Below are positions 2,277 to 27,178 of a stretch of 64,000 nt of DNA, one piece after another. Positions within the stretch are counted from its first letter, which is position 1; every line of letters begins with the position of its first letter. The DNA lies in sequence record MW760841.1; one strand, given 5' to 3'. The translations under genes and the position numbers were made by a program. The notes beneath the pieces were generated by a model. The model was not told where the DNA came from. It was given only the letters and a program-made list of their open reading frames with translations, and did not search any database.

Positions 2277-2279
2277 GTC

Positions 2280-3107: not shown

Positions 3108-3110
3108 TGT

Positions 3111-3128: not shown

Positions 3129-3158
3129 TTGTAGTGTTGTGGGACGTTAGGAGTCACT

Positions 3159-4538: not shown

Positions 4539-4543
4539 TTAAC

Positions 4544-5548: not shown

Positions 5549-5557
5549 GGAGCGGTC

Positions 5558-6487: not shown

Positions 6488-6499
6488 TGGAGTAATACC

Positions 6500-7945: not shown

Positions 7946-7955
7946 GGAGTAAGTG

Positions 7956-8954: not shown

Positions 8955-8957
8955 GTT

Positions 8958-9863
8958 ATGTCAATTGTATTGAGTTGGAAACCACAACCGGGACAAACAC
9001 TCGACGCGGTAGAAATCTACCGTTATGCCGCACCTCGTGGTACCGTGAATCCGAACAGTCCGGGTACGCCACTGGCTATCCTACCGGGTAATGCCACCAC
9101 CTACGAAGACACAACCGTCACGGCGAACACAACGTACCAATACCGCATCATGTCAGTGAAAGGTTCGGATAAGGTCATGGGCTTCCCGATTATCCAGGCG
9201 GACTTCACGTACACTGGTCCTGGGCCCCAGAAACTGATTCGTGGGGATTGGTGGTGCGGTTATTTCGGCACTTTACCCAATACCGATTTCATCCTGAACT
9301 TTTCGGAGTTGAACGGTCTTATTGGTTTCAGTGCCTGGAACAACAGCCCGCTGATTTACCACAAGTTCGTCTTTAAAGGTCGCATTCTGTTTATCCCGGA
9401 TACGTGTACCCGCAACGGCACTACTTGGGAAGATCAATACCGGCAAGGACTGATGTGGGGCACCGACGATGTCGGAAACTCGCCGTACGGCATGTCTCAA
9501 AACGTTAATCAACGTAAGACGGTAGCCAAAAATGGTTTCGAATACGTCGTGCGTTTACCACGGTTAGGCGACTATAACCAAGTCCACAATGTGAACATGG
9601 GTTCGTTTAATTTTTATAGCGAGGGCGAATGGTTAAACACCTTCGGCCGACTGGTACGCTATAACGGCGCGCTGAAACGTTTTTCGGATTACGATTTACG
9701 GGCTGGAACGAATTACCCCGACGTGACCGCGACGTGGTTTGCAAATGGTTACAATTCGCAATTGCCGTGGTTTTATCGCGCGAGCACACCAGAATCGCCA
9801 ACGTACACCAACCAAAACGTGAGTGGCGTCGCCTTCCATGTTTTAGAGTTGGTTCTTAACTAG
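8958..9863 (+). CDS. Cassette 2 gene C
   Basis: MSIVLSWKPQ; GPGPQKLIRGDWWCGYFG; HKFVFKGRILFIP. Confidence 0.72.
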   Translation: MSIVLSWKPQPGQTLDAVEIYRYAAPRGTVNPNSPGTPLAILPGNATTYEDTTVTANTTYQYRIMSVKGSDKVMGFPIIQADFTYTGPGPQKLIRGDWWCGYFGTLPNTDFILNFSELNGLIGFSAWNNSPLIYHKFVFKGRILFIPDTCTRNGTTWEDQYRQGLMWGTDDVGNSPYGMSQNVNQRKTVAKNGFEYVVRLPRLGDYNQVHNVNMGSFNFYSEGEWLNTFGRLVRYNGALKRFSDYDLRAGTNYPDVTATWFANGYNSQLPWFYRASTPESPTYTNQNVSGVAFHVLELVLN

Positions 9864-9874
9864 CAGGAGACCAC

Positions 9875-11272
9875 ATGGGGTTATACAGCCAACCGCCGTT
9901 AGAGTTACTCTGTCGGCTCATTATGCGTGATAATCCCCAACTCGCAATACCCCTCGACCCTACCAAGGTCATGGTGTTAAGCGGACCTTTGACAACCGGA
10001 CTCGGGACTAGCGGGCGTAACACCCGCGTTATCCTGAACGGGAAGACGGGGTCGGGGATTGTAGGCAAGAAAGAATTCTTCTACGACCGTATCAAACTCA
10101 GCTCATTGTTCAACGGTATCACCGTGGTCTTTGATGCTGCGGGTGGGGCGGCGAAGGTGTCTGACCTCTTGCCTGCATTAAACGAACAATACGGGATTCA
10201 ATTGTCCCCCGCTGACTTGAGCAACGGTGACACTGTCCTGGGCTACGCGTACACGCCTACGCCTGTGACGTTCAACATTGCGACAACCAGCCTTGCCTAC
10301 TCAGGTACTTTGACAGCCACATGGCGACGTTTGCCCGTGGGTACGTTCCCCGAATCCGGTCCCGGTTCGAAGGTGATGTTAATCGGTGATTTGAACGAAG
10401 GTTACTTCGGTCGAGTAACAGCAGCCGAGATGATGACGCAAGGTGAGTTCTTTAGCAACTACTTTGCTGACCATCCGCGTAACACAGCTGCCCCGATTAT
10501 CGACCCGGCGTTGTATTGGCTCAAGTTTGCCTTAGACGGCAAGTTTGTGTTTGTGCCAAGCCACAGCCTGATTGCTAACATCACCTGGGATCAGATTAAC
10601 GCGAATGGCAATGCGGACGGCAGTGCGCCGTTCCCACTGCTGTTGAAGAAAGGGACTGATAACCACTTCTTCAATATTCGCTTGCCGCGTTTCTCGACCA
10701 CCTATGAGATTGCCCCAGGGCGCAGTGACCCGACGGGTGACAACAACCGGCTGTTTGCGAAGGTACACAAGCAGGCGTACGGCACCGGCGTCTGGGACGC
10801 GGTGACACTGTTGGATTTCACGTCTGACTTTGTCTGGTGGAACCGACGTAGTGATATGCCTACGGTCGAACAGCGATTTATATCGCAGTTTACCACCAGT
10901 GGCGTGTCGTCACAGTTATCGAACGTGAACGCTAACTGGCGTCCCGTCTTTACGTTGGTGGATGGTAAACTTATCCTGATGCCAGTGAACAGCGTTACAG
11001 GTGTGCCCACAGGACGCATCAAAGCCCCTGTGCTGACGATTGACCGTGAACCTGACCCGTTACAACCGAAACGAGTAACGGACGTCACAGGGACGCTTCT
11101 ACGCGCTTTCCCGAAACCGCGCTTGCAGCCAATCGAACTGTATGTGGTTTTACCTGTCAGTAAAATCGTGCCGATTAATACCATCAAACGTTTCCCTGTT
11201 AACATTACGGTCACCTTCGATGCTCGCTTCCCGTTAGCTGCGGCTAATGGCGAGTTAGATGGTTTTCGTTAG
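9875..11272 (+). CDS. Cassette 3 gene A
   Basis: MGLYS, SGRNT, GPGSKVMLIGDLNEGYFG, WRPVF, C-terminal NGELDGFR. Confidence 0.75.
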   Translation: MGLYSQPPLELLCRLIMRDNPQLAIPLDPTKVMVLSGPLTTGLGTSGRNTRVILNGKTGSGIVGKKEFFYDRIKLSSLFNGITVVFDAAGGAAKVSDLLPALNEQYGIQLSPADLSNGDTVLGYAYTPTPVTFNIATTSLAYSGTLTATWRRLPVGTFPESGPGSKVMLIGDLNEGYFGRVTAAEMMTQGEFFSNYFADHPRNTAAPIIDPALYWLKFALDGKFVFVPSHSLIANITWDQINANGNADGSAPFPLLLKKGTDNHFFNIRLPRFSTTYEIAPGRSDPTGDNNRLFAKVHKQAYGTGVWDAVTLLDFTSDFVWWNRRSDMPTVEQRFISQFTTSGVSSQLSNVNANWRPVFTLVDGKLILMPVNSVTGVPTGRIKAPVLTIDREPDPLQPKRVTDVTGTLLRAFPKPRLQPIELYVVLPVSKIVPINTIKRFPVNITVTFDARFPLAAANGELDGFR

Positions 11273-11282
11273 GAGCTAGTCT

Positions 11283-12320
11283 ATGTCTTTAAAACTTACT
11301 TGGGCTAACCCCAACGTGGTGGCCAACAGTGTGGCCATTTATCGGGGTGATGCTGAATTAAACACCGCAGCATTACCGACGCCGTTAGTTGTGTTAACCG
11401 GTGGGGAAACTACCTGGACGGACCTTACTGCCGATTTCGGGAAAACCTATTACTACGTTCTCGGCACACGGACGCAGTACGACGAAGTGTTTACTGCTAA
11501 CCAGAAAATTCTGGTTGTGGATAACCGGGGTGCGGGGCCGAGTGTATTGAAATACGGTGACGATAACCTGGGTTACTACGGTTCAGTGCTGGGGGCAGAC
11601 TTCGTGGGTTACGGTGACTTCCAAGCCGTTGCAGCAGTAGCAATGTCTAACTTAGCGTGGTCCCCATCCTGGCACAAGTTCGTGCGTAACGGGAAGATCA
11701 TTTACGTACCAGACAGTGTGCCGCCGGACTTTTGGACGTGGCAGCAAATCTATCAGTTCGGGTTTATGTACGGCATCGATGCGAACTACCCGCCGGGCTT
11801 AACCTTCACCGGTCTAACGGCGACCAACCAAAATCGTATCATTGATTTCAAAGGACAGAAATACCGCGTCCGTACCATTCGCGGCTGGAGTGATGATCCG
11901 CTTAGTCAATTCGTCTCGACGGTTGTCACTAACAATGAAAGTGATGCAGCCGCCGTGCTAATAAAGAACAACGAGTTCAGTGACTTCATTTATGCCTTAA
12001 TGGCGTACGTGCCACTGAAACAGCGTACTGAGAACTACGCCGAAAATCCCGATCCGGGCACATACGTGGGGGTAGCGTATAACGCTGGGTTTAACTCCGA
12101 TAACCAGACGCTGGAGATGAACCGTGGACGCGTGTTATGTCAAGAGCGTGACCCTGGCGCGGTCACTGCAAGTATGCTGACTCGCGGTTTACGAGCGACG
12201 GGTTATTCCTCGGTTCCCGGTTGGAACAAAGCAAACCTGACGTATATTCAAAACCGACCCGTGAATACGCAGGCGCGTTGGCTCCCGGTGTTAGAACTCA
12301 TTGATAGCGTTGTTCTTTAA
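11283..12320 (+). CDS. Cassette 3 gene B
   Basis: MSLKLTWANPN; GAGPSVLKYGDDNLGYYG; WHKFVRNGKIIYVP; WLPVLEL. Confidence 0.72.
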   Translation: MSLKLTWANPNVVANSVAIYRGDAELNTAALPTPLVVLTGGETTWTDLTADFGKTYYYVLGTRTQYDEVFTANQKILVVDNRGAGPSVLKYGDDNLGYYGSVLGADFVGYGDFQAVAAVAMSNLAWSPSWHKFVRNGKIIYVPDSVPPDFWTWQQIYQFGFMYGIDANYPPGLTFTGLTATNQNRIIDFKGQKYRVRTIRGWSDDPLSQFVSTVVTNNESDAAAVLIKNNEFSDFIYALMAYVPLKQRTENYAENPDPGTYVGVAYNAGFNSDNQTLEMNRGRVLCQERDPGAVTASMLTRGLRATGYSSVPGWNKANLTYIQNRPVNTQARWLPVLELIDSVVL

Positions 12321-12329
12321 GGAATCATT

Positions 12330-13214
12330 ATGGGCGTTAAATTAAAATGGGATTTGCAAGTTACCCAGAATCTGGATGCCATTGAAATCTATCGGAGCAA
12401 CAACCCCATCGATTTCGCTAATCCTGGCACCCCATTGGTGACACTGGCCGGGACGGCAACCGAGTTCGAAGACTTCACCGTCAAGAACAAGAACCTCTAT
12501 TATTACCGCATCGCGGCTAAGAAAGGAGCAGAACGCGGTTGGGGTGAAAACCAATTAACCGGTTACTTCTCAGAAACTGGGCCAGGACGTGCCTATCCGC
12601 TACGTGGGGATTGGAACGCGGGGTTAATGGATATCCTCCCGCAGGCGAACCTTATCACCATGCCGGACTTCTTTGCGAAGCTGCCACAGTTAAGTAAATT
12701 CGGCGGCGTATCCGCAGGTATTACTAGCTGGTACAAAACCTGTTACAAAGGTAAGGTCATCTTTGTGCCGAGTGGTCCAGTGCTGACGGCGTCCTGGAGC
12801 GAGCTGTACGGGGCGAAGGCTATCTTCGGTGAAGACAGTTCGGTGCAGTTACCGAACGGTACCTTAGCCAGCGGTAAGCTGACCGTTGACATCAACGGTC
12901 TGACGTACATCGTGCGTTGTCCGAAACTGTCACCACTTCCCTACTCTACGTACCTAACGACACAAGACCAAACCCTCAACAGTGAGTGGCGTGATACTGT
13001 GTCGCGTTTGTGTCTGCTGTCCACCGAACCACAACCGGGAGCTAAGTCACGTCTGTTTGACTTGGGCGCAGCACCGGCGACGGTATTGGGTGGCCACATT
13101 CAAACTACCGTTAACTGTTCGGCGATATTGCCTGCTGCACCGGGTGCTTTATCTTACGGTGCGATGGCCAGTCGCTATGCCGTCGGGCTTGTGCTCGAAC
13201 TCGTTATGCCTTAA
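12330..13214 (+). CDS. Cassette 3 gene C
   Basis: MGVKLKWDLQ; GPGRAYPLRGDWNAG; YKGKVIFVP. Confidence 0.72.
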   Translation: MGVKLKWDLQVTQNLDAIEIYRSNNPIDFANPGTPLVTLAGTATEFEDFTVKNKNLYYYRIAAKKGAERGWGENQLTGYFSETGPGRAYPLRGDWNAGLMDILPQANLITMPDFFAKLPQLSKFGGVSAGITSWYKTCYKGKVIFVPSGPVLTASWSELYGAKAIFGEDSSVQLPNGTLASGKLTVDINGLTYIVRCPKLSPLPYSTYLTTQDQTLNSEWRDTVSRLCLLSTEPQPGAKSRLFDLGAAPATVLGGHIQTTVNCSAILPAAPGALSYGAMASRYAVGLVLELVMP

Positions 13215-13225
13215 AGGAGAAAAAC

Positions 13226-14752
13226 ATGGGGCTTTACAGCAAGAAGTCACTGGAGCTACTGTGCCAGTTAATCGAGCGGGATAATCCCCAGTTCACCAAT
13301 CCTCTTGATGCGCAAAGCATCATGGTGTTGAGTGGTCCACTCACATCCGGTTTAGGCTCCAGCGGGCGCAATGCCCGCATTATTCTCAACGGTCGTACCG
13401 GGACAGGTATCGTGGGGAAAAAGGAGTTCTTTTATGACCGCATTAACTTAACGCGGTTGTTTAACGGCATCACTGTCGTTTTCGATGCAGCTGGAAGTTC
13501 GAAGACATATGCAGATTTGCTCCCTGCGCTCAATGAGCAATACGGGATGGCTTTAGAGGCAGCAGACCTCAGCAACGGAACCACTAAACTTCCGTTCGGC
13601 TATACCCCAACACAGGTGACACTTAACATCGCTACTACCTCGGTGGGCTACACCGGTAGTTTAAGTGTGACTTGGACACGTAAGCCCGTAGGTGTGTATC
13701 CGGACTCTGGGCCGGGTACGAAGGTATTGTTGATTGGTTCGATTGAAGAGGAAGGGTACTTCGGTACTGTCTCCGAAGCTGAACTGTTCGGTGCCCCGGC
13801 AATCGTATCGAAAATCAACGAAGGAATGGCGAGCCCCGCAGGGACATTGACGGCTATCCCCGCTACCCGACTGTGGTATAAGTTTGCGCGAGATGGGAAG
13901 ATTCTGTACCTCGCCAACTATAACCAAATCACCATCAAGTGGCAAGAGCTGTATGTCCGTGGTGCAGCCTATGAAACTGACCAACACGAAGACAAGCAGT
14001 TCCCGACGGACGGTGTGTTCGTTGCCCAACGTCCGGTTATCCGGAAGATGGAGAATGGACGTGCCTGGTATCTGTCGCCGTGTATGCCACGCTTGGCAGA
14101 ATCAGACCCGTGGGATTATCAGGCGGTTAACCAGACTCCTGACCCAACCGGTGATGTTGCCCGGTTGTTTGCCAAGATTGTAGCAAGCGGTGGGTTTGCC
14201 ACCGGGGAGTGGGACGGGCAGAGTATCGACGCCACTGGCTTCTGGTTCTCCACGACGTCGATGAAAGAACCTGCGAAAGCCTTCGGGAGTAGCATGACCG
14301 GCATCCAGCAAAACATGTACGACAAAGCGACCTACAATGGTGGCTGGCGTCCGATGCTGGAACTGGCTGATTTGGATAAAATCGCTATTCCGTTGGAAGA
14401 GTTCATTGGGGAACCCGATGGGGTGTTGCGTAAACCACGGTTTACCATCAGTCCAGATACCGGCGAAGTGTTGCTGATTGTCAGTGATGTCGCCTGGGAA
14501 ATCTCGGGTGCGTTGGATAAGCCACTGATTGACATGGTTCTCGAACCTCCGTTGAATACGAAGGAAATCAGTTGGGAACGTGACCTGCCAACCCCACTGA
14601 TGCAAGTCGTCTCTGAACCCCTGTTATCAGTGAACACCTACGGTTGGAAAAAACTATTGCGAGCACCCGTGACCCGGATTACGTCCGAGTACAAGGAAGT
14701 GGTGGCCTACGACCTGAGAACGGCCGATGGCGAACTCGATGGCTTTAAATAA
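13226..14752 (+). CDS. Cassette 4 gene A
   Basis: MGLYS, SGRNA, GPGTKVLLIG..EEGYFG, WRPMLEL, C-terminal DGELDGFK. Confidence 0.75.
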   Translation: MGLYSKKSLELLCQLIERDNPQFTNPLDAQSIMVLSGPLTSGLGSSGRNARIILNGRTGTGIVGKKEFFYDRINLTRLFNGITVVFDAAGSSKTYADLLPALNEQYGMALEAADLSNGTTKLPFGYTPTQVTLNIATTSVGYTGSLSVTWTRKPVGVYPDSGPGTKVLLIGSIEEEGYFGTVSEAELFGAPAIVSKINEGMASPAGTLTAIPATRLWYKFARDGKILYLANYNQITIKWQELYVRGAAYETDQHEDKQFPTDGVFVAQRPVIRKMENGRAWYLSPCMPRLAESDPWDYQAVNQTPDPTGDVARLFAKIVASGGFATGEWDGQSIDATGFWFSTTSMKEPAKAFGSSMTGIQQNMYDKATYNGGWRPMLELADLDKIAIPLEEFIGEPDGVLRKPRFTISPDTGEVLLIVSDVAWEISGALDKPLIDMVLEPPLNTKEISWERDLPTPLMQVVSEPLLSVNTYGWKKLLRAPVTRITSEYKEVVAYDLRTADGELDGFK

Positions 14753-14764
14753 GAGGACTTAAAC

Positions 14765-15748
14765 ATGGCCTTAAAACTTAAATGGAAAAACCCCAATAAA
14801 GGCGCAACCACGGTTGACATTTATCGGGGCGATACCGCGAATGTGGATTTAACCACACCGCTCGTTTCTCTATTGGCCGGAGAGCTTGAGTGGATTGATA
14901 CCACGGCTCTCTTTGGCAAGACTTATTACTACGTGTGGGCTGTTAACACCGCCAATGACCGCGTAGTCAGTCGTCCTCAGAAAATCGAAGTGAACGACCG
15001 TCAGGGCCCAGGCCCGAATCTGCTGATGCACGGTTCAGAATCTTACGGATACTTTGGTACCGTACCGTCGGCGGATTTCGTCAACAGTTCTGCTATCTTC
15101 GCGGCCCTGAAATCGATGTCGGGTATCCCAAACAACATCATCTACCCAACGTGGCATAAGTTTATCCGCAACGGTAAAGTGTTATTCGTACCGGATAACC
15201 GCATTGGGGATGTGACCTGGAACAACCTGTACGCGGCGGGTGCGGTCTATGGCACCAACGACAACGGCCCGTCCAACAGTCCGGGGAACGTCAACCAGTT
15301 GTGTACGTTTGAACTCAACGGTGACTTGTTCCTGGTGCGTGCACCGAAAGCTGTCCCCGATGGCATGGTGTGGGACAACACTGCGGTCGACCTTGACACC
15401 TTACCGGCGGCGAAGGATATCTATTCTGAATACGAAGACATCTTCTTCCCGCTGATCGCCTTCACCCCTTTACGTCAGCGTATGGTGAACGTCGCAGAGA
15501 TGAACCCACAGTCGATTCTACCTACGGGTAGTGGTAACGATCGTACCAGCATCGGTGTGTGTTGTCAGGAAGTGGCAAGCGCAACTGCCGCAGCACAGCG
15601 TGGGATCGGGTCTTACAACTGGGCCAGCAGCAGTAGCCGCGACCAGGTGCGTAACTTCTCACTTCGTGGGCGTACTTCGGCGAACGTTTGGTGGCCAATT
15701 GTGGAGTATATCGGCCGTGTGGGTGAAGTTGACCTGGCACACATTTGA
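14765..15748 (+). CDS. Cassette 4 gene B
   Basis: MALKLKWKNPN; GPGPNLLMHG..SYGYFG; WHKFIRNGKVLFVP; WWPIVEY. Confidence 0.72.
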   Translation: MALKLKWKNPNKGATTVDIYRGDTANVDLTTPLVSLLAGELEWIDTTALFGKTYYYVWAVNTANDRVVSRPQKIEVNDRQGPGPNLLMHGSESYGYFGTVPSADFVNSSAIFAALKSMSGIPNNIIYPTWHKFIRNGKVLFVPDNRIGDVTWNNLYAAGAVYGTNDNGPSNSPGNVNQLCTFELNGDLFLVRAPKAVPDGMVWDNTAVDLDTLPAAKDIYSEYEDIFFPLIAFTPLRQRMVNVAEMNPQSILPTGSGNDRTSIGVCCQEVASATAAAQRGIGSYNWASSSSRDQVRNFSLRGRTSANVWWPIVEYIGRVGEVDLAHI

Positions 15749-15757
15749 GGATAAGTC

Positions 15758-16660
15758 ATGGGTATTACAATCAAGTGGGACAGCCAGGCTGACCAAAATC
15801 TGGATGCGATTGAAGTGTATCGCTCCACCTCGCGGATTGATGAAAACAATCCCGGTACGCCAATTGCAACACTGGCAGCCACAGCGACAGAATACGTGGA
15901 CAACAATGTTCGTGTAGGCAACACGTATTACTACAGCGTGGCGGTAGTGAAGGGTGCCAACCGTTCGTTCGGCGCTAACCAAACTCAGGGGTATTACTCT
16001 AACCTGGGGCCAGGCCCACAAAAGGTTATTCGTGGGGACTGGGTACGGGGTTACTTCGGTGAAATGACACCGGCTGAGTGGGTGACACCGGTCGATGTGG
16101 CGAACAAGATTAAAGATCAGTTGAAGAGTGTGGTGGGGATGTCTTTCGCTACCTCTACCAGCGGAACCTGGTTCAAGTTCGTTTATAAAGGTAAGATCAT
16201 CCTGGTGAACACCACCGCTTTGGTGAGTGCGACCAACTGGACGAACATGTATAACGCAGGCTTCATCTACGGAACCGATGACTTCGGTAAAACCCCGACA
16301 GGTGATGCAGGGGCGGTTAACCAGCGTTGCGTTATCGAAGTGGGTGGTTATCAGTTCCTGGTGCGTGGTGTACGCATGAGCGATAAACCGTTTACTGAGT
16401 ACATCACTACGCAGGAAGACTTCAACAAAAGCGAATGGAAGAGCACGTATGCCCGTCTGAAATCGGACAGTGCCGCTCTGACTGACCCAACCATTCTCCC
16501 GCGCTTCAACGATAACGGGACATCCTTAGCCTCGGTGAGTGCCCATGCGTTTGATGCCACCAACCAGGTGAGTATTGCCGCAGCGACGCCTGAGGTACTT
16601 GGGAAAGCCGCGAAGACCGGTACCCAGCCAGTGTTGGTTGTGCTCGAACTGTTGCAATAA
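15758..16660 (+). CDS. Cassette 4 gene C
   Basis: MGITIKWDSQ; GPGPQKVIRGDWVRGYFG; WFKFVYKGKIILV. Confidence 0.72.
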   Translation: MGITIKWDSQADQNLDAIEVYRSTSRIDENNPGTPIATLAATATEYVDNNVRVGNTYYYSVAVVKGANRSFGANQTQGYYSNLGPGPQKVIRGDWVRGYFGEMTPAEWVTPVDVANKIKDQLKSVVGMSFATSTSGTWFKFVYKGKIILVNTTALVSATNWTNMYNAGFIYGTDDFGKTPTGDAGAVNQRCVIEVGGYQFLVRGVRMSDKPFTEYITTQEDFNKSEWKSTYARLKSDSAALTDPTILPRFNDNGTSLASVSAHAFDATNQVSIAAATPEVLGKAAKTGTQPVLVVLELLQ

Positions 16661-18992: not shown

Positions 18993-19703
18993 TCAGACGT
19001 TTAACATCGGAATCTGATTAACCGGTGGGTGCAACGGTTGAGACGGCCAGAACTTGTCTAAGGCGTTAATAGCACGCTTGATGTTCTGATAGCGCATGTT
19101 CACACATTTGCAGGTGGTGATGTCCCAATGCTCGTGTGACGGGATGGCTGGTTCGATATCGTTACGGAAGAACAGATAGTTACGTGCGTAATTCAACGTA
19201 ATGTCCGACACCGACGGATAGCGATACTGATGCGGGTCATCGTTCTTGTCCGCATACGACGGCCAACCAAAGTTACTGACGGCTTCGTAGAACGACTTGG
19301 CGATGAACTTATCCACGCCCATCATTTCCATAATCCGCAGGAACATCAAATCCGCAAACTCTTTGGTGGACGCCCGCGACAGATTTCCTTCCGGGGTGTC
19401 AGGATACGGCACCGGGGTTGGGGTCTTCTGATACAACATGTCATGGACACACGCCGCAGCAGCCCACGGGCCATCCGGATGCAGCATCGGTTGTAACACA
19501 GGCGGGATACTGGCCAGGTCGGTGACAAAGCCCGCTGGGACCGTGACATACATCTGCTTGTCCGGATGCACACCCGACTGGTACACCATCTCATCCATCC
19601 CCGGATGGTCACGGTACAACGTACGTAACGTGAACGGAATGTAGAAGTCTTCGGTTACGATGAACCACTGCTTCTCCAGCACTTTATATTTCAGCTCTAA
19701 CAT
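18993..19703 (-). CDS. DUF1353-family protein
   Basis: VPAGFVTDLASIP...AAACVHDMLY...ADLMF..IM..MGV motif set typical of DUF1353. Confidence 0.75.
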   Translation of the reverse strand: MLELKYKVLEKQWFIVTEDFYIPFTLRTLYRDHPGMDEMVYQSGVHPDKQMYVTVPAGFVTDLASIPPVLQPMLHPDGPWAAAACVHDMLYQKTPTPVPYPDTPEGNLSRASTKEFADLMFLRIMEMMGVDKFIAKSFYEAVSNFGWPSYADKNDDPHQYRYPSVSDITLNYARNYLFFRNDIEPAIPSHEHWDITTCKCVNMRYQNIKRAINALDKFWPSQPLHPPVNQIPMLNV

Positions 19704-19872: not shown

Positions 19873-20475
19873 TTATTTAGAACATACGCCTACCTTGATA
19901 GCGTAATCGCCCATCTCACGGTAGACACGGTCGTACCAGCCGTACGTGAACTCTTCGTTCTGTACACGCTTCTCAGAAATCTCGGTGTAGTACGCCACCT
20001 GGTGTGAGGTCAGCGCAAACATCAGACGGTTAAAGCCATCCAGGCCGCGAGCTTTCAGGAAGCCGTTCAGTGCGTTCATGGTCAGCGTACCGATACCGCC
20101 ATCAGCGTCGATGTCAGCATACAGTTTGCCCTGACGGTTCAGTACGTTCAGGATACGTTGCAGGGATTTAATGCAGTTCGCACGACCGGCATTGATACCG
20201 AAGTCGAACATACGGTCAGCCAGCAGTGGATTCCACGCGAGAATCTGGTCGAGACGCATACGGTCCCACCACATTTTCTTGTAGATGTCGATTGCCATTG
20301 CCTGGGTCAGGTCACGCATGTTGCCTTTGTAACCGTACTCAGTAGCAGTGGCTTTGGTGATACCCCAGATGGTTTCACCACCCAGGTCGTTCGGGTTGTT
20401 TACATAACCCGCTTCGATGTTAACCTTGGCACGGATAATGCCTTCCATGCTCCAACGGTCTACGGCCATTGCCAT
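19873..20475 (-). CDS. Glycoside hydrolase family 108 lysozyme with PG-binding C-domain (endolysin candidate)
   Basis: EAGYVNNPNDLGGETIWGIT, MFDFGINAG, DADGGIGTLT, EFTYGWYDR; GAGGA RBS. Confidence 0.88.
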   Translation of the reverse strand: MAMAVDRWSMEGIIRAKVNIEAGYVNNPNDLGGETIWGITKATATEYGYKGNMRDLTQAMAIDIYKKMWWDRMRLDQILAWNPLLADRMFDFGINAGRANCIKSLQRILNVLNRQGKLYADIDADGGIGTLTMNALNGFLKARGLDGFNRLMFALTSHQVAYYTEISEKRVQNEEFTYGWYDRVYREMGDYAIKVGVCSK

Positions 20476-20531
20476 ATATAGTTCCTCGTACGTTAATGAA
20501 TGTCATACGAAGCGTAAAAAAAATAAAGAGA

Positions 20532-20551
20532 GTGTGCCCCGAAGGGCACAC
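20532..20551 (-). terminator. Terminator closing the tail-fibre/radical-SAM unit
   Basis: GTGTGCCC-CGAA-GGGCACAC (UUCG loop on - strand) followed by a T-rich tract on the - strand. Confidence 0.8.
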
Positions 20552-20555
20552 CGTC

Positions 20556-21212
20556 TTACGCCAAGTTCTCTTCCTTGGCCATTGCCATCACCGCAGTGAA
20601 GTTATTCTGCTCAGCCAGCGTGCGAAGTTTTTGTTTCTTCACATTCAGCGCCATGTGCAGTTCGTTATCACGTTGGATAATCGCCGCATACAGCTCTTTC
20701 ACGTTTGACAGGTCAAACGGCTCGACTGGGGTGTTCATCGCATCAATCCAATACATCGGATCAACACCGGACTGGATATAGCCAGCCAGCGCTGTACGCG
20801 ATTTCTCGGTAGCCTGATAACGATGTTCACCAACCACGATGTCTTCGTAGCGCAGGTTTTCGTAACGGGTGTTTAACTCACCCAGAATACGGTTAAACTC
20901 ACGCCACAAATGCCCTACCGTGGACGCCAACCCTTTACGGATATCATCCAGCGGCAGTTCCAGTACATCGGCGATAAAGTCTTTGGTCTTCTTCATGATG
21001 AAGTTGACTTCGACATCTGACAGGTCGTAACCTTTCAACGCAGCCATTGCCGCTTTGTCGGTCATCCCGTTTAACAGATGGTAATGCAGCAGGGTACAGA
21101 ACCCCTGCTTGGTAGCATCTTCGGTACGGTGAATCGCCTGGTAATTGCCATGACGGTCAATTGGCGCACCCATTTCGAAGTAACGACGTTTTATTTCGTC
21201 ATTAGTAAGCAT
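20556..21212 (-). CDS. DUF4376-like protein (tail-fibre assembly associated)
   Basis: C-terminal half YQATEKSRTAL...YWIDAMNTPV..DL..VKELYAAI..R...H...KQ resembles the DUF4376 pattern; recognised by eye. Confidence 0.55.
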   Translation of the reverse strand: MLTNDEIKRRYFEMGAPIDRHGNYQAIHRTEDATKQGFCTLLHYHLLNGMTDKAAMAALKGYDLSDVEVNFIMKKTKDFIADVLELPLDDIRKGLASTVGHLWREFNRILGELNTRYENLRYEDIVVGEHRYQATEKSRTALAGYIQSGVDPMYWIDAMNTPVEPFDLSNVKELYAAIIQRDNELHMALNVKKQKLRTLAEQNNFTAVMAMAKEENLA

Positions 21213-21748
21213 TCATTCGCTCCTACCAGCCCCAGTTCCATTGCCAGCCCGAAGTCGAACATTTGGAAATCGACTTCTAACTCATCACCGAAGTGGAAGT
21301 TAAGCAGCTTGGCATCGTCCTGGTTCTGTTCCATGAAACTAAACATCATGTGCATCTCTTCCCCGAAGGCATCATACTGCTCCAGGGAACGACAGGCACG
21401 GACGCGAATCTCAGGCCAGTTCATGGCGAGACCCAGTAAGTTATCGGCATCCATATTGCGCGTAGAACGGCGCAGGATTTCGATTTTGTGGCGCGGGAAG
21501 GTTTTGATGCGTTCCTCGACACCGGGGTTACGCTTCTCCACTTCCTGCAACGAGAGATGACCACCTTCCAGACCGGACAGCGGAACAATCACGTTCAGCC
21601 CAAAGCGAACACACAGGGCTTCCACTTCCTTGGAGAAGTCTTCAGCCGGTACAATCGCGTGAACATTGTACAGCTTATGTTTACGGAGAAACAAGTCTAC
21701 CAGGTGAAGACTACGCTTCGTAAAATTGTGTATCAGCAGGGACTTCAT
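21191..21748 (-). CDS. Hypothetical protein (185 aa) in the radical SAM cluster
   Basis: Overlaps both neighbours (operonic); no recognised motif. Confidence 0.65.
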   Translation of the reverse strand: MKSLLIHNFTKRSLHLVDLFLRKHKLYNVHAIVPAEDFSKEVEALCVRFGLNVIVPLSGLEGGHLSLQEVEKRNPGVEERIKTFPRHKIEILRRSTRNMDADNLLGLAMNWPEIRVRACRSLEQYDAFGEEMHMMFSFMEQNQDDAKLLNFHFGDELEVDFQMFDFGLAMELGLVGANECLLMTK

Positions 21749-23051
21749 TCGCAGGTGCTCCTAATTGAGTTTTCTTTTCTGCCTCAGAGCGCGCACGTAC
21801 ACAGGATACGCAGTAGCACTGGGTCTTATCGTTCAGGTCGGTGTAGCGGATTGTGCCGGTCTTCTGATAGAAGTATTCGGCGACAAGCAGCTTAGCCGTC
21901 GTCCAACCACACTGGCGACGTTCGCCATGGTATTCGCGACGAGCTTCCAGTTCACCATCACCGTTTTCGTACGCCGCCGCAGCACAGCTACCACAGGCGT
22001 GTTTCATCGGGCAACCCAGGCAAGTTTCTGGGTAGTTGGTGTACTGCTTATTGATTTCACCTAACAGCTTACCGCCGTCGGTGTTCACAATCTCACGTCC
22101 CACTAACTCGCCAATGGCCTGGCGGGTGGTAACAGTTGACATGAAGCGGTTACAACCGTAAATCTTACGGTCGAAGCCCAGGCAGGTCATGTGCGTAACG
22201 GTACCGCAGAATGGACGCACACGCTCAGGGTCGAGACGGGTTGCTTCATCATCCAGCAGTTTCTGACGCCAATCCGGGTCCCACGTTGCCATGAAGTCCA
22301 GACCATCTGGGAAGATGTGAGTCAAACGGTTACGCGGGTCTTTCTGCAAGCCCTTCTCAAACCAGTAGTCAATCACGTCCATCATCTGGTTCGCGATTTC
22401 CAGCGCGGAGCTACGTGGCAGTACGTCTTCGTACGTTACGTTACCGGACAGGGTGCCACCGCCGGTGACGTCAATCAGGTGCTTCATCGACGCGCCGTAT
22501 TTCGGCAGCGTGTCAGCAGTAAAGGTGGCCTTCACACCCAGTTCGAGGATACCCACGGACTTGAGGTAGTTATAGCCTTTCATCGCCTTCTCGTACGACC
22601 CTTCACGCGTAGTGGTGAAGATACGGTACTTATCGTGCACTTCCGGCAGACCATCGATGGATACGCCGATAGACAGTCTGTCTTTCCAGCGTTCGATGAT
22701 TTCACGGTTCAACGGTTTGTCGAACAGCGTACCGTTCGTGGAGATAGAGAAGATGACATCACGCCCATCACGGGCGGCCAGTTCTTCTGCGGCTTCAAAC
22801 ACACCCAGCAGAATCTTCGGCTGCATCATTGGTTCACCACCGATGATGTCGATAATCACTTCCACGTTCGGGAGGTGACGGTCACGGTCGAAGCACGCAT
22901 GGATGAAGTCTACCGCATCCGCCACTTTGTTGTTACGCGGATACTTACGTTCGTAGCAATACTCACAGTCGAGATTGCACGACAGGTTGGTCACGACCTG
23001 ATAGGTCTTTGTGATTTTCGGCTCTACGGCCGGAATGAAACTATCGCGCAT
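21711..23051 (-). CDS. Radical SAM/SPASM peptide maturase (Cxxx-repeat target type)
   Basis: CNLDCEYC (CxxxCxxC), IIGGEP, ISTNGT, SIDG..HD..R; SPASM FCG..C..GC and CLGCPMKHACGSC...C. Confidence 0.92.
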   Translation of the reverse strand: MRDSFIPAVEPKITKTYQVVTNLSCNLDCEYCYERKYPRNNKVADAVDFIHACFDRDRHLPNVEVIIDIIGGEPMMQPKILLGVFEAAEELAARDGRDVIFSISTNGTLFDKPLNREIIERWKDRLSIGVSIDGLPEVHDKYRIFTTTREGSYEKAMKGYNYLKSVGILELGVKATFTADTLPKYGASMKHLIDVTGGGTLSGNVTYEDVLPRSSALEIANQMMDVIDYWFEKGLQKDPRNRLTHIFPDGLDFMATWDPDWRQKLLDDEATRLDPERVRPFCGTVTHMTCLGFDRKIYGCNRFMSTVTTRQAIGELVGREIVNTDGGKLLGEINKQYTNYPETCLGCPMKHACGSCAAAAYENGDGELEARREYHGERRQCGWTTAKLLVAEYFYQKTGTIRYTDLNDKTQCYCVSCVRARSEAEKKTQLGAPANEVPADTQFYEA

Positions 23052-23946
23052 TGTTTAGCCCCGCCTGAATAGTTCGATTGATGTACTTGTACGCGTCAAA
23101 GCCAATCACTTCGGCCAGACGGTTACACCCAGAGTCAATGGCATCAACTGCGTTCTGACTCTGCTCAAAAGTCGAATCCGACTTCACCCACACCAGGCTG
23201 CTGCAATCGTCACAATGCTGAGCGAAGAACTTATTGATGCTCAGGGGAATGTGTGAATCGTTGATACGATTCAGATAGGTCAGCTGCTCGTGCATTTTGT
23301 TGTAGCCGTACATGAAGTTCATTACATGGTCAGGCGACAGCGGTTTAGGCATGAAGTTATCGAACATCAAACGGAAGCCGTTAAACCCGTAGTGATACGT
23401 AGCGCGATGCAGTTCCAGTAAATCGTCCTGCCAGCGCTTATCACCCAGCTGCTCACGGGTTACGACAGACCACAGGCTCACATTGTTGAGAGCGTGCAGG
23501 GTATCAAACGCCTCAAAGCGACCTTCTTCTGCAATCCGCAGTAAAGGACGTTCTGATTTAGCGTACCCGTCAAACGAGACGAAGATACGGTCAAGCTGGG
23601 AGAGTAGCGGAAGCTGCTCAGGGCTCAGACGCAACGCGTTAGTGTACATCTCGTGTTGCAGGTGCGGGTAACGTTCTTTCAGTTCTGCCATGAACTCCTG
23701 GATTTTCTTGAAAGCCAACAGTGGCTCTCCGCCTGTCCAGTTAATCTGGCGGATTGACGGATGCTTTTCCAGCACCTCGAACAGTTTATCTTTCTGGATG
23801 TCGCGCGCAACGTCCTTGACATCCATATACCCCGCACCACCACAGAAGCTACAATCTAAGTTGCACTTCGAGGTGGTAACGATAGACAGTTCCATGGGAG
23901 TGTCTGTCGGGTCGCGACGAATGGCCGACACAGCTTCTTCACTCAT
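23041..23946 (-). CDS. Second radical SAM enzyme (301 aa, short C-terminal Cys motif)
   Basis: CNLDCSFC, WTGGEPLL, MYTNA, VSFDG; C-terminal CDDC...GC. Confidence 0.88.
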   Translation of the reverse strand: MSEEAVSAIRRDPTDTPMELSIVTTSKCNLDCSFCGGAGYMDVKDVARDIQKDKLFEVLEKHPSIRQINWTGGEPLLAFKKIQEFMAELKERYPHLQHEMYTNALRLSPEQLPLLSQLDRIFVSFDGYAKSERPLLRIAEEGRFEAFDTLHALNNVSLWSVVTREQLGDKRWQDDLLELHRATYHYGFNGFRLMFDNFMPKPLSPDHVMNFMYGYNKMHEQLTYLNRINDSHIPLSINKFFAQHCDDCSSLVWVKSDSTFEQSQNAVDAIDSGCNRLAEVIGFDAYKYINRTIQAGLNNAR

Positions 23947-23967: not shown

Positions 23968-24855
23968 TTATTCGAATGTCAGTGCAAACAGTGGGTCTTC
24001 TTTGATGTCCACACCCTGCTTCAATACGAAGGGGTCGTGGTAAGCAGCAAGAATCTTGTTCAGCACTTCATGACGCTCGTTAATGCGTTCCAGGTCATCG
24101 AGAGTAACCTTACGTTCCAGGATTGCACTAGCGGCCACTTGCTCTTCAACGCTCAGGTCAACCTTCTGCATTAAGAAGCTCACCAGCTTCGTTAAGTCTG
24201 CTTCGGTTCCCGGCGCTTCACCGTACTTCCACTGCACCAGATACTGCATCCACGGTTTGCGGATACGTTTGGTGATTTCGTGTTCGTCAGTGATAGCAAC
24301 GAATTTCTTTTCCGCGTGCAGCCATTTAAACTTATAGCTGAATGCTAAGAGGTCGAGCATCTTGTGGATGCCCAGGCTTTCGTAGCCTTCGATTGGGTAA
24401 TAGATTTCTACCCCTTCGTAATGCTCGGTGTCCGCAGGCACTTGCGAATACCAGAACGGCAGGGAACTCGGGTAGTCCCAGCTCCATTCACGACGCACCA
24501 TTGGCTTGAGGCCGGTTTCAGCAAACGGAGTCAACAGCATTTCCAGATCGCCACACTGGTTCAGCACACCGTCGCTGAAGAAGTATTTACGGTCAATGAA
24601 CTTGCCGTTGATTTCCTGCTCGCCGGTGTTCAGGTAGATATGCTCAACCTTGTGCCCAGCCAACATGTAATCGTTCAGCACTTCGAAGTTCTTCGGATTG
24701 ATTAACTCACGCCCACGCACCTTCGGCCATTCAGCAGGCAACTGCGTAATCAACAGGATTTCGCCTGTCAAGTGATACTTTACGCTGTCGTAAATACTGA
24801 CTTGTAACGGAAAGTTCTGCGTTGTGCGGAACGCAAGGTGCATATCGTTCTTCAT
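23968..24855 (-). CDS. Hypothetical protein (295 aa) between the peptides and the radical SAM genes
   Basis: GGGGAG RBS, tight spacing, long ORF; no recognised family. Confidence 0.7.
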   Translation of the reverse strand: MKNDMHLAFRTTQNFPLQVSIYDSVKYHLTGEILLITQLPAEWPKVRGRELINPKNFEVLNDYMLAGHKVEHIYLNTGEQEINGKFIDRKYFFSDGVLNQCGDLEMLLTPFAETGLKPMVRREWSWDYPSSLPFWYSQVPADTEHYEGVEIYYPIEGYESLGIHKMLDLLAFSYKFKWLHAEKKFVAITDEHEITKRIRKPWMQYLVQWKYGEAPGTEADLTKLVSFLMQKVDLSVEEQVAASAILERKVTLDDLERINERHEVLNKILAAYHDPFVLKQGVDIKEDPLFALTFE

Positions 24856-24867
24856 TTAAAACTCCCC

Positions 24868-25074
24868 TTAGCGGTTTCCTGCGCCGTGACTACAGCCGCC
24901 GCTGCACGTCCAGCTGCAAGAGCCACCACAATTGTAATGCGATAATGGGAGACCCGCCAGGTTGTTGGTGGTGCTTACCGTGCCACTGTTACGAATGTAA
25001 TCGTTCGCATCGTCGGTACGGATATAGCCTTCCACTTGCGCCAGCTTGTCTCTGACAAGTTTAAGTGATATCAC
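24868..25074 (-). CDS. Cys-rich peptide 3 (68 aa, 4 Cys; GTG start at 25074)
   Basis: MISLKLVRDKLAQVE matches the peptide 1 leader; core CGGSCSWTCSGGCS; GGGGG RBS-like run upstream. Confidence 0.75.
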   Translation of the reverse strand: MISLKLVRDKLAQVEGYIRTDDANDYIRNSGTVSTTNNLAGLPLSHYNCGGSCSWTCSGGCSHGAGNR

Positions 25075-25121
25075 AGTAACCCCCAAGTGTGTAAAAAAGA
25101 TGACGAGGGTCGGCTACACTG

Positions 25122-25517
25122 TTAGCGCATCGGTCCAGAGCATCCTGAGCAACCGGAGCAGCTTGAGCTGCACGATGAACTACAACCGCCTGTACAAGTG
25201 CCCGAGCAACCGCTAGAACAGCTACCAGAACAGCCTGAACAGCCCGTACACGTCGACGAACAGCCTGACGTACAACTCGCAGAGCAACTGGCCCCACAAG
25301 TTCCTGATGCCGAGCCTGAGCATCCGCCGGAGCATGAGGAGCAGCTCCAACTACAGGTACCACCGCAGTCATAGTGTTCACGGGAGAAACCCCCGAAGCG
25401 CTGTGAGTTGTTGGTGCCTTTGTTGCGGATGTAGGTTTGCACACCGGCTGTGTTCTTCAATGACGCTGCATCGATAGCATTAAGCCGGTTTTGAATATCT
25501 TTAAGGTTGATTGCCAT
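25122..25517 (-). CDS. Cys-rich (Cxxx)n precursor peptide 2 (131 aa, 20 Cys)
   Basis: 50-aa Cys-free leader + 81-aa core made almost entirely of C/S/G/T; GGGGA RBS. Confidence 0.88.
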   Translation of the reverse strand: MAINLKDIQNRLNAIDAASLKNTAGVQTYIRNKGTNNSQRFGGFSREHYDCGGTCSWSCSSCSGGCSGSASGTCGASCSASCTSGCSSTCTGCSGCSGSCSSGCSGTCTGGCSSSCSSSCSGCSGCSGPMR

Positions 25518-25526
25518 GTTTTTCCC

Positions 25527-25910
25527 CTACGGCCCCGAACAGCCGGAACAGCCACCGCAGCCGGAACCACAGGAACCAGAACAGCCGCTACATTTACCAG
25601 AGCAGCTACCAGAGCAACTCCCGGAACAACCGGAACAACCTGAACAGCCGGTAGAACACCCGCCTGTACATGCACCGGTACACGTTGAGGTACAAGTACC
25701 CGAACAACTCGTACACGATGCGGAACAACCATTAGAGCACGACCAGCTACACGTTCCACCACAATCCAACTGAGCAGGCGTCCAACCAGCGAAGCGATCC
25801 GCTGCGTTAAAAGCCCCTGATGCTACTTGGGCATCAACCCGAGGTCCAGTTGCGTAAGTGTTCTCCACGCTTTGCAGGCGGTCGCGTACGTTTTTTAATG
25901 AGATTGCCAT
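25527..25910 (-). CDS. Cys-rich (Cxxx)n precursor peptide 1 (127 aa, 21 Cys)
   Basis: 49-aa Cys-free leader + 78-aa core of Cxxx/Cxx units; AAGGA RBS. Confidence 0.88.
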   Translation of the reverse strand: MAISLKNVRDRLQSVENTYATGPRVDAQVASGAFNAADRFAGWTPAQLDCGGTCSWSCSNGCSASCTSCSGTCTSTCTGACTGGCSTGCSGCSGCSGSCSGSCSGKCSGCSGSCGSGCGGCSGCSGP

Positions 25911-25972: not shown

Positions 25973-27178
25973 TTATTTGGTACCTGCTTCCGCCTGTACG
26001 TCGTCGCGAGATGTGAGGCTCGAGTTGACGTGTACCGCAGCTTGTACAACACCGCCGTACTGTTTGTGGAGGTATTTCGGGTGCGGGTTATCGGCGTTGA
26101 TGTGGTTCGTCAGGTTCTGAGACACCGTCGAGATACCCGAGGTGTTATTCGCAACCTGCTGTTTCAACGCGGTCAAATCCTGTTGCAACTGCTGAATCTG
26201 CTGCTGGGTATCCTGGCCTGAGTTTTCCAGGTCAGTGACACGCTGATTCAACCCGGCAATCACCTGATTCTGGTCAGTGACCATCTTCTGGAGTTGCGCG
26301 ACCAGGTCGTTCAGATTCGCCATCTGCAACGCCATACGCTGATAGTTCTGCGCCACTGCGTTCAGCTGATCATTCCAGGAACCCAGAGCCGCGACAATCG
26401 CGTCGATGCGTTGGTTGATAGCCGTGTCTGCCGCTTTCAGATCCCCAATGTCTGCAAGGACAGCGTTAATCGCCGTTTGCACACCTTGAATCAAAGCACG
26501 GATTTCGGTTTCCGTCAGACCGTTGGCCTGATGGATATCCAGACTGTGAACGTTACCTTGAGCGTTGATGTGATTATTCAGTGCAGCCATAAACTGCGTC
26601 TGCATATTCTCAATCAACGATTTCAGCTGTTCAAGCTGGACCGTGTTCCCGGCGTTGATGCTATCCTTGATACCTGCCAGTTCAGTGATGATGTATTCAA
26701 AACCGAAGATGTCGCCGATGTCTTTAAAGGACGGAGCAGCCGCAAAAGTATCTGGAACGTTACGCAGGTCTTTGAAGTCGACCACCCGGTCATCGAGGTT
26801 CGCATCAATAATCGCTTGCTTAATCGCAGCAATCACCGCTGACTGTGGACCACCGACAACCTGGGTAGAGGCAATGACGTCTGTCGGGATGGCGCTGTTT
26901 GTGACAACGACCGCCATACAGACTTCTTTGTTACCGGCAAGTTTTTGGTAAACGGGATGGGCAAAGATTAACTCGTAATCCACCCCACGTTTGTAGGTCG
27001 TGTTAGGCGCATTCGCGGGACGCAGTTTAAAGTCATCTGCGTAGAACGGCCCTGCTGGAAAGGCAAACGCACGGTTTACTTTCCCACCACCCAACACAAT
27101 AGGAATGCTGACGGCATTGCTCGTCATCTTCCCCGTCAAGTCGAGCGGGTACTGAAATAAAATATCTGGCATGGCCAA
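25973..27178 (-). CDS. Tail-fibre-family protein with long coiled coil (401 aa)
   Basis: N-terminal YPLDLTG..SN..GPFY..GVDYEL domain shared with the three long fibres; heptad-rich Q/L segment; HINADNPHP. Confidence 0.72.
   Translation of the reverse strand: MAMPDILFQYPLDLTGKMTSNAVSIPIVLGGGKVNRAFAFPAGPFYADDFKLRPANAPNTTYKRGVDYELIFAHPVYQKLAGNKEVCMAVVVTNSAIPTDVIASTQVVGGPQSAVIAAIKQAIIDANLDDRVVDFKDLRNVPDTFAAAPSFKDIGDIFGFEYIITELAGIKDSINAGNTVQLEQLKSLIENMQTQFMAALNNHINAQGNVHSLDIHQANGLTETEIRALIQGVQTAINAVLADIGDLKAADTAINQRIDAIVAALGSWNDQLNAVAQNYQRMALQMANLNDLVAQLQKMVTDQNQVIAGLNQRVTDLENSGQDTQQQIQQLQQDLTALKQQVANNTSGISTVSQNLTNHINADNPHPKYLHKQYGGVVQAAVHVNSSLTSRDDVQAEAGTK

Follow-up and report, generated by a model that had tools for sequence, protein, structure and literature searches.

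Three Cys-rich peptide genes beside radical SAM enzymes in a jumbo phage as possible detached modules of the distal tail fibre

The pairing of a SPASM radical S-adenosylmethionine (SAM) enzyme with a substrate built of Cys repeats is known already, from the in silico families TIGR04114 and TIGR04115, from PapB and from CrpC. To our knowledge, SPASM maturases of Cys-repeat peptides have been described almost only in bacterial clusters resembling those for peptides that are synthesized by ribosomes and modified after translation (RiPPs), with one recent case of an archaeal protein. Fibres of the P2 gpH/gpG and lambda Stf/Tfa type have specialised C-terminal tips and dedicated assembly chaperones, and we know of no fibre, nor did the literature searched contain one, that is matured by radical SAM enzymes or carries Cys-repeat tails. 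Here, we analyse a 64,000-nucleotide stretch of sequence record MW760841.1 (the window), in which three tightly packed paralogous genes on the minus strand, pep1, pep2 and pep3 (25910-24868), encode by translation Cys-rich proteins of 127, 131 and 68 aa. Comparison with other phages suggests, with a probability of roughly 0.55, that these proteins are detached modules of the distal tail fibre, probably cross-linked by radical SAM enzymes, and not a secreted RiPP.

Among the closest described systems, the CXXX-repeat system (TIGR04114, TIGR04117 and TIGR04115; PF27846) resembles the window in that Cys occurs many times at every fourth residue and in that the substrates are encoded beside a SPASM radical SAM enzyme. 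The PapB/PapA (freyrasin) system shares with the window a SPASM enzyme without a large N-terminal extension and repeated C-x3 units, and two reports describe PapB as making Cys-Asp/Glu thioethers (PMC9413430, PMC10739248). In Methanococcus voltae, the SPASM enzyme of the CrpA/CrpB/CrpC system puts ranthionine crosslinks into a Cys-rich protein and not into a short peptide; its paralogous substrates have 47 N-terminal residues in common, and one of them, poor in Cys, is suspected to be a helper (PMC13692751). Radical SAM thioethers in an entire Cys-rich protein have a direct precedent here. CteB of the SCIFF system and SkfB, which are the best solved relatives of the window enzymes, both make Cys thioethers in peptides.

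The three genes of the window are as follows.

25527..25910, minus strand: pep1, 127 aa, with a 49-aa N-terminal region and a 78-aa core; 21 Cys; C-terminus CSGP
25122..25517, minus strand: pep2, 131 aa, with a 50-aa N-terminal region and an 81-aa core; 20 Cys and one Ala at a Cys register
24868..25074, minus strand: pep3, 68 aa, with a 48-aa N-terminal region and the first motif; 4 Cys; C-terminus GAGNR

The 5 kb of the window that were compared are 100% identical to the Erwinia amylovora jumbo phages pEa_SNUABM_4 and pEa_SNUABM_8 (about 249 kb, filed under Machinavirus), and the conserved cluster ties both phages to the group of Salmonella phage SPN3US. Each gene has a Shine-Dalgarno sequence, read as AGGAA for pep1 and as GGGGG for pep3, whose GTG start agrees with the public annotation; the mechanical open reading frame (ORF) of pep3 extends to a TTG at 25086. 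No attenuator-like structure was found by RNA folding in the spacer between pep2 and pep3 (z = -0.3), and a promoter scan found no sigma-70-like site 5' of pep1, which is unsurprising since the phage has its own polymerases. The homologous N-terminal regions and Cys-rich C-terminal regions described by an earlier note on this DNA were borne out by translation. The N-terminal regions open with MAISLKNVRDRL in pep1, MAINLKDIQNRL in pep2 and MISLKLVRDKL in pep3, and the small motifs listed in that note are present as well: YIRNKGT in pep2 and YIRNSGT in pep3, and RFAG, RFGG and NLAG in pep1, pep2 and pep3, which end seven residues ahead of the first Cys. The cores start with DCGGTCSWSCS in pep1 and pep2 and with NCGGSCSWTCS in pep3, lack Asp and Glu, and use S, T, G, A and N and rarely K, R, H, V, I or Q. 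At the DNA level, the pattern C-x-G-x-C-S-W has three copies in the 64 kb, all at pep1-3, with 0.02 expected and 0 of 100 shuffles reaching three. All three proteins match phrog_6085 ('unknown function'; E 4e-45, 6e-53 and 4e-26), and no Pfam family was found for them or for the Cys-tailed fibres described below, even at E 10.

Judged from sequence divergence, the three genes are real and under strong purifying selection. In comparisons with the phages Caitlin, Stratton, Asesino and SPN3US, synonymous sites were heavily diverged (proportion of synonymous differences, pS, 0.3-0.9), and the ratio of nonsynonymous to synonymous differences (pN/pS) was 0.03-0.11 for the pep1 core, 0-0.17 for the pep3 core and 0.17-0.28 for the N-terminal regions; in three diverged relatives the pep3 core is identical at the protein level despite a pS of 0.5-0.9. 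The lower core values indicate that the low-complexity core is under tighter constraint than the 'leader'. A low-complexity artefact or wrong-strand ORFs are ruled out by pN/pS and conservation; where records annotate ORFs on the opposite strand, as several do, these arise as by-products of the repeat. Public annotation is affected in several GenBank and RefSeq records of the group (L001, L003, L005, L007, L008, L009 and L010), where pep1 and pep2 are unannotated, truncated or swapped for opposite-strand ORFs. In SPN3US a fragment of pep2 (gp166) is the sole trace of pep1 and pep2, and pep1 and pep3 are unannotated. A protein-database search with the N-terminal region of pep2 returned only two matches because gene callers miss the peptide genes. 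Contigs from one public run that contains a close relative break within the pep1 repeat region (25510-25630), so a repeat that is hard to assemble may contribute to the annotation gaps. Sequencing runs contain relatives with 92-97% identity, including short contigs in wastewater RNA libraries, which do not establish transcription.

The genes downstream of pep3 are co-directional and overlap or nearly so, and since pep1-3 stand directly upstream of two radical SAM enzyme genes, they are by position very likely the substrates of these enzymes.

23968..24855, minus strand: accessory protein, phrog_8030, 295 aa, orphan fold
23041..23946, minus strand: radical SAM enzyme 2, 301 aa, PF04055, with CNLDCSFC and three C-terminal Cys conserved in the alignment
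21711..23051, minus strand: radical SAM/SPASM enzyme 1, 446 aa, PF04055, with CX3CX2C at residues 25-32 and conserved SPASM cysteines
21191..21748, minus strand: 185-aa protein, phrog_7988, overlapping both neighbours; its homologue adjoins the SPASM enzyme in a distant phage contig (L103)
20556..21212, minus strand: 218-aa DUF4376 protein (PF14301, E 4e-10; phrog_8169), the final gene of the co-directional run
20531..20552, minus strand: terminator-like hairpin directly after the DUF4376 gene, from a consensus scan only; 9 bp, 6 of them GC, with a T-rich tail

The SPASM enzyme has the cysteines for three iron-sulfur clusters (CX3CX2C plus C282, C290, C300, C344, C347, C353, C356 and C381), which are invariant in six aligned orthologues and stay so when a 30%-identical Campylobacter enzyme is added. 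Its best NCBIfam matches are PapB (126 bits, cut-off 340) and TIGR04115 (114.4 bits, cut-off 350), while models of cyclophane maturases of the XyeB/GrrM/FxsB/YhhB type score 30-55 bits for either window enzyme. Five of five sampled members of the same SPASM subfamily likewise have TIGR04115 and PapB as their best families, all below threshold (125-183 bits), with TIGR04115 best or second-best. By sequence, the best solved relatives are CteB for the SPASM enzyme (5wgg, E 4e-15) and SkfB for enzyme 2 (6efn, E 2e-5), both over the radical SAM core only. For enzyme 2, the public records of SPN3US (L008, 4346-5281) and CR5 (L009, 4200-5057) place the start about 40 codons late, so that the CNLDCSFC cluster motif is lost, although the full ORF is intact. 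One metagenomic SPN3US-like lineage (L025 and L034, 2542-3453) has an extra paralogue of this enzyme (303 aa) between pep1 and pep2.

Set against the described systems, the phage locus differs in substrate, enzyme and context. Relative to the CXXX-repeat system, the window and subfamily enzymes reach 114-183 bits at a cut-off of 350; pep2 has weak sub-threshold matches to the targets TIGR04117 and TIGR04114 (14.5 bits for the target model, cut-off 20), and pep1 and pep3 have none. The phage cassette also lies in a fibre module and includes a second radical SAM enzyme, an orphan-fold accessory protein and DUF1353, and its aromatic junction motif and mixed three- and four-residue period are outside that family's definition. 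Unlike PapA, the phage cores have no C-x3-D/E donor-acceptor motif; the enzyme score is under the 340-bit cut-off of PapB, and the substrates are proteins of 68-131 aa or whole fibres with about 20 repeats. CrpC belongs to TIGR04463, has a RiPP recognition element (RRE) and acts on 17- and 34-residue repeats with C-x-x-Q/D, and the Crp system is archaeal, cellular and linked to growth on pyrite, without a virus or fibre context. CteB has an N-terminal RRE, which the phage SPASM enzyme lacks because its CX3CX2C begins at residue 25 and leaves no room, and the substrates of CteB and SkfB are unrelated to pep1-3.

The locus has the architecture of RiPP precursors, with a shared N-terminal region, a Cys-rich C-terminus and adjacent maturases. 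It could thus be read as a classical phage RiPP, in which the leader guides the enzymes and is cleaved and the cross-linked core is freed at lysis and diffuses away, for instance as an antibacterial, a signal or a metal chelator. In keeping with this, several paralogous 'precursors' stand upstream of the maturases, the nearest enzyme families are RiPP maturases, and one related cluster has a Peptidase_C39 gene (see below). Against it, no peptidase, exporter, transporter or immunity family was recognised in the operon with Pfam, NCBIfam or PHROGs, the SPASM enzyme is without an N-terminal RRE, and the core is better conserved than the 'leader'. We consider a RiPP unlikely, also on account of what the same enzymes accompany in other phages: the 'leader' junction and core form the C-termini of fibre proteins (L036, L104, L106 and L108), and wherever the phage surroundings were readable the cluster lies within a tail-fibre module.

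When a profile of the SPASM enzyme was searched exhaustively, its subfamily gave dozens of full-length clusters that scored over 190 bits. Eleven further genomic contexts were read, ten from this search plus L036 (identical to L099-L102), a P2-like prophage in chromosomes of Campylobacter pinnipediorum, of which CP012546 is named in PMC6226163. The gene order in L036 is gpW, gpJ, gpI, fibre, 250-aa protein, SPASM enzyme, second radical SAM enzyme, DUF1353, sheath and tube, so that the cassette takes the position behind the fibre at which P2 encodes an assembly chaperone. The 384-aa fibre (PF12571; 12 Cys in the protein) ends in a CSG-repeat tail of 40 residues. The SPASM enzyme of L036 is 30-32% identical to the window enzyme over the full length, and its 284-aa second enzyme is orthologous to window enzyme 2 (hhalign 97%, E 1.6e-10, full length). 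A comparison of the peptide profile with the L036 fibre aligned a low-complexity stretch only and was discarded. In the lambda-like L104, gpJ is followed by a 296-aa fibre whose C-terminal tail is Cys-rich (9 Cys in the whole protein), then by a 252-aa accessory protein and three radical SAM genes, and finally by DUF1353, a holin, a GH108 endolysin and an integrase. L108, also lambda-like, has gpJ, two genes, a 273-aa fibre, a 254-aa accessory protein, a radical SAM enzyme, a SPASM enzyme and more fibres; the C-terminal part of its 273-aa fibre, which has 15 Cys, contains AQDAEKLEGKTGSYYRCTGCTWTC and shares the junction motif of the window.

L106 has three tandem fibre-like paralogues, one short (217 aa) and two long (268 and 288 aa). 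The 217-aa fibre ends in LGGQDPDYYRCTTCSWTC plus 14 residues, and the window peptide profile aligns with its junction at an hhalign probability of 85%; the motif Y-Y-x-C-x2-C-S-W is the same in L106 as in the window peptides. The two long fibres have terminal Cys tails (18 and 21 Cys) and match phrog_6085 (E 4e-9 and 2e-11), and the 217- and 268-aa proteins match the tail-fibre family phrog_28766 in their N-terminal parts. The likeness to the window peptides is confined to the core and the latter half of the N-terminal region. The second half of what the earlier note took for a leader, together with the core, is elsewhere the C-terminus of fibre proteins of 217-384 aa, which leaves the framing of pep1-3 as leader and core doubtful. 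In L103, a distant phage contig with Peptidase_S74 fibres, a SPASM enzyme and a second enzyme, a triad is encoded as in the window: a pep1-like protein with 21 Cys, a pep2-like protein with 21 Cys and a Tyr at the aromatic position, and a pep3-like protein with 2 Cys. L103 also has homologues of the 185-, 295- and 401-aa window proteins. In L036 and L104 the gene next after the radical SAM genes is DUF1353, which in the P0061 contig stands two genes past the SPASM enzyme. The contexts of L107 and L110 are too short to tell, and P0057 and L105 have large CXXX-repeat proteins (PF27846) and no recognisable fibre. Precomputed PF27846 matches lie on the Cys-rich neighbours in L105, L106 and the P0057 contig. 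A non-exhaustive scan of GTDB genomes with the enzyme profile, via two motif patterns, gave only remote radical SAM proteins from Saccharibacteria and Omnitrophota.

Homologues of the accessory protein with at least 40% identity are mostly from unnamed contigs, and the named ones are from SPN3US-like phages, Salmonella records and one Shewanella metagenome-assembled genome. The accessory protein matches the 322-aa protein of L103 (BLASTP E 1e-6), and in a comparison with the 250-254 aa proteins that follow the Cys-tailed fibres of the prophages hhalign gave 75% (E 2.6e-5), so that the jumbo-phage and prophage proteins are probably remote homologues, as far as profile comparison goes. The AlphaFold2 (AF2) model is confident (pLDDT 87, pTM 0.81). 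Fold searches against PDB (Foldseek), VIA wide, AFDB clusters, ESM Atlas and BFVD matched orthologues only, and a language-model search gave nothing; one uncharacterised AFDB protein with E 6e-9 was rejected, since its TM score was just 0.41.

Within the SPN3US-like group, for which the triad was collected from 11 annotated phages and 18 IMG/VR genomes, pep1, pep2 and pep3 were found at every locus read. In a tblastn search of the phage collection, clear homologues were confined to SPN3US-like phages, and matches in Vibrio, Campylobacter and gut 'Bacteriophage sp.' turned out to be generic radical SAM proteins. The Cys count of pep1 is exactly 21 in 19 of 19 distinct sequences; that of pep2 is 20 (12 sequences), 21 (3) or 23 (3), and the pep3 core has 4 (15 sequences) or 2 (7), the latter in the CR5, Kwan and Derbicus lineages. 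About 80% of the Cys-Cys spacings are three residues and about 20% are two (three-residue intervals: 309/380 in the pep1 set and 296/360 in the pep2 set, which includes a few entries from one false regex match), with C-[S/T/G]-[G/S/A]-[S/G/T] as the repeat unit. Exactly 21 core Cys recur in all 19 distinct pep1 sequences, in both long L103 peptides (6809-7598) and in the 288-aa fibre of L106 (3022-3888).

The earlier note had described an invariant start of the core, (D/N)CGG(T/S)CSW(S/T)CS, with a single Trp at a fixed position. This is so in the window, and for the start in the genus as well; across the SPN3US-like phages the conserved form is C-x-G-x-C-S-[W/F]-x-[C/S]-S, preceded by D, N, R or H, with Phe in place of Trp in SPN3US-type pep2 and Tyr in the pep2-like protein of L103. 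Similarly, pep2 has CSGSASGTC with Ala in the expected Cys register, as noted earlier, but in the CR5 and Kwan lineages this residue is Cys, and the retention of the first four Cys by pep3 is true of the window and not of the three lineages with two. The alignment of homologues which that note proposed does single out the first motif as the element with the deepest conservation: nothing else that contains Cys is shared by the three paralogues, and the motif persists in the distant L103, L106 and L108. That it is the primary enzyme site is unsupported. An aromatic residue (W, F or Y) is kept in the modules of the jumbo phages, L103, L106 and L108, and the Cys-rich tails of the L036 and L104 fibres, under the same cassette, are without one. 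The proposed Trp-linked crosslink is weakened by this, and because W, F and Y are tolerated and the prophage fibres can do without, it is improbable that the core chemistry is a Trp-specific crosslink; the residue may serve a step that depends on an aromatic side chain, or its part at the junction may be purely structural. Conservation of a short third paralogue in two distant phages indicates that pep3 is a functional member and not a decayed copy, and the idea of pep3 as a minimal, capping or regulatory variant would fit this conservation.

A Cys at each third or fourth position, the gaps filled by Gly, Ser and Thr, and a count of 21 that is fixed in pep1, in the L103 pep1- and pep2-like proteins and in the 288-aa core of L106, would also suit a region that mainly binds metal or iron-sulfur clusters with its thiols free, on the model of metallothionein or of the iron-binding needle of the T4 long tail fibre, the radical SAM enzymes making one or a few modifications, for example at C-x-G-x-C-S-aromatic. 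Metal sites in fibre tips are known from T4 gp37. The cores have no obvious acceptors for PapB-type thioethers, and upregulation of the CrpA gene cluster on pyrite has led to the suggestion that CrpA may bind metal (PMC13692751). The closest relatives of the enzyme subfamily, however, act on the CXXX repeats themselves; a single site would hardly seem to require two or three radical SAM enzymes in each cluster, and the aromatic motif is missing from the prophage fibres that these enzymes accompany. We rate metal binding as the main function somewhat below even the RiPP.

In the window itself, the pep1-3 locus sits between paralogues of the gp167-170-like fibres on one side and DUF4376, an endolysin and DUF1353 on the other.

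25973..27178, minus strand: 401-aa short fibre-like virion protein upstream of pep1, homologue of SPN3US gp167; phrog_2163, coiled-coil Pfam matches
18993..19703, minus strand: DUF1353 protein (PF07087, E 1.6e-18; phrog_1158, 'tail assembly chaperone')

The 401-aa protein consists of an N-terminal attachment domain, which is common to proteins of 1364 and 1233 aa, and a coiled coil, with no obvious tip domain; a 1698-aa protein lies between it and these two. It is labelled a virion structural protein in the annotation of relatives, and its homologue is kept in the L103 cluster. SPN3US gp168 belongs to the same paralogue family as gp167 and is a tail protein related to phiKZ gp131, located at the baseplate periphery (PMC5105663). 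The DUF1353 and DUF4376 chaperone-like genes nearby would also suit assembly factors that are not part of the final virion, such as sacrificial scaffolds or chaperone-like partners of the gp167-170 fibres, with pep3 as a helper; a chaperone role was suggested for CrpB (PMC13692751), and the virion-proteome report on SPN3US is silent on the peptides. Two things speak against such factors: the fibre proteins of relatives include the module covalently, and a transient scaffold would not usually have a repeat core of 80 residues conserved to such an extreme. Of the explanations considered we regard assembly factors as the most improbable.

If pep1-3 are modules of the distal fibre, as we favour, they would be small structural or adaptor proteins of the tail-fibre apparatus, equivalent to the Cys-rich C-terminal fibre module of other phages. 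A single co-directional run would then make them together with their maturation cassette, that is the accessory protein, the SPASM enzyme and the second radical SAM enzyme, with the DUF1353 chaperone-like protein nearby. The shared N-terminal region of 48-50 aa may be a handle for enzyme recognition, for fibre attachment or for both, formed by an amphipathic helix and the fibre-type junction [N/D]-x3-[L/F]-x-G-x5-Y-x-C. We infer that the SPASM enzyme would install crosslinks along the C-[S/T]-[G/S]-x repeats, most likely thioethers, and that the second radical SAM enzyme would do a further step, possibly at the C-x-G-x-C-S-aromatic motif. The fibre tip would thereby gain redox-insensitive covalent staples for a thin rod rich in Cys, Gly and Ser. 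Enzyme-made thioethers could be useful here because particles assemble in the reducing cytoplasm, where disulfides are unavailable. The products would join the short gp167-like fibre. Tail fibres are trimers, and together with the two long and one short members of the triads in the window clade, L103 and L106 this suggests that the products may do so as a heterotrimer sharing the N-terminal region and the first motif.

A wider reading, which we hold tentatively and with less confidence than the fibre-module assignment itself, is that the accessory protein, SPASM enzyme, second radical SAM enzyme and DUF1353 are a mobile cassette that lets unrelated lineages (SPN3US-like jumbo phages, P2-like prophages and lambda-like prophages) put RiPP-type crosslinks into distal fibre ends. 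In the jumbo phages the tip would be split into three proteins, forming a heterotrimer with a 21-Cys ladder, and this might be the first radical-SAM-modified virion protein.

Several points weigh against the fibre-module assignment. The virion-proteome paper on SPN3US does not mention gp163-166 (PMC5105663), although its annotation lacks pep1 and pep3 and the cores offer almost no Lys/Arg sites to trypsin. PapB-type chemistry is not simply transferable, since the cores are without Asp/Glu acceptors. The link between the accessory proteins of jumbo phages and prophages is moderate (hhalign 75%). The AF2 monomer of pep1, an N-terminal helix with the rest unstructured, is uninformative (pLDDT 43). 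Finally, the enzyme subfamily also appears to serve RiPP-like systems, as indicated by the Peptidase_C39 gene of L105, a cluster without a recognisable fibre. At 2955-4620 this low-GC contig encodes two paralogues (PF27846), one of 322 aa whose CXXX repeats contain 62 Cys and one of 227 aa, adjoining a SPASM enzyme of the subfamily and the C39 gene.

Our searches, from which most subscription journals lay outside, found no literature on these peptides or on radical SAM enzymes acting on tail fibres. As far as these comparisons reach, the tail-fibre context, the cassette of two enzymes, accessory protein and DUF1353 across unrelated lineages, the split three-gene form and the fixed 21 Cys appear to be new, with no description of them found. 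The same enzyme type appears wired into the fibre module of SPN3US, a genetic model among giant phages, of Erwinia amylovora biocontrol phages and of Campylobacter prophages. If the modification is real, it would be a new kind of post-translational chemistry in virion assembly, would account for two conserved 'radical SAM' genes listed without function in the genome papers of these phages, and may bear on fibre stability and host recognition; the 68-aa pep3 would offer a minimal substrate for enzymology. A mobile cassette, if true, would be a new principle for building receptor-binding tips. Independent of this, the peptide genes are systematically overlooked or put on the wrong strand when these phages are annotated in public records.

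Some further observations concern the surroundings and related clusters. For the 185-aa protein of the run (21191-21748), a language-model search pointed only weakly to sulfotransferase-like families, with a score of 0.89 and few features in common. The window (19873-20475) and L104 (8391-8954) both have, a few genes downstream from the cassette, an endolysin built of Glyco_hydro_108 and PG_binding_3, which may be coincidence or a shared module. A different protein family of 190-240 aa with 31-39 Cys is found in other viral contigs (L037, 2523-3745; L109, 9627-10343). The L037 proteins have repeats of the 'C-T-C-N-C-N-Y' type behind a conserved N-terminal domain of about 95 aa, and these clusters, with five or six radical SAM genes each (five in L109, beside a 'CTCNCNY'-repeat protein), look analogous but distinct. 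Beside the fibre module of the window, on the plus strand at 538-16660, lies a tandem array of about 17 paralogous genes of about 275-510 aa, which from the first triplet on form recurring sets of three of similar sizes; six tested members belong to the 'virion structural protein' PHROGs 1037, 3589 and 1062.

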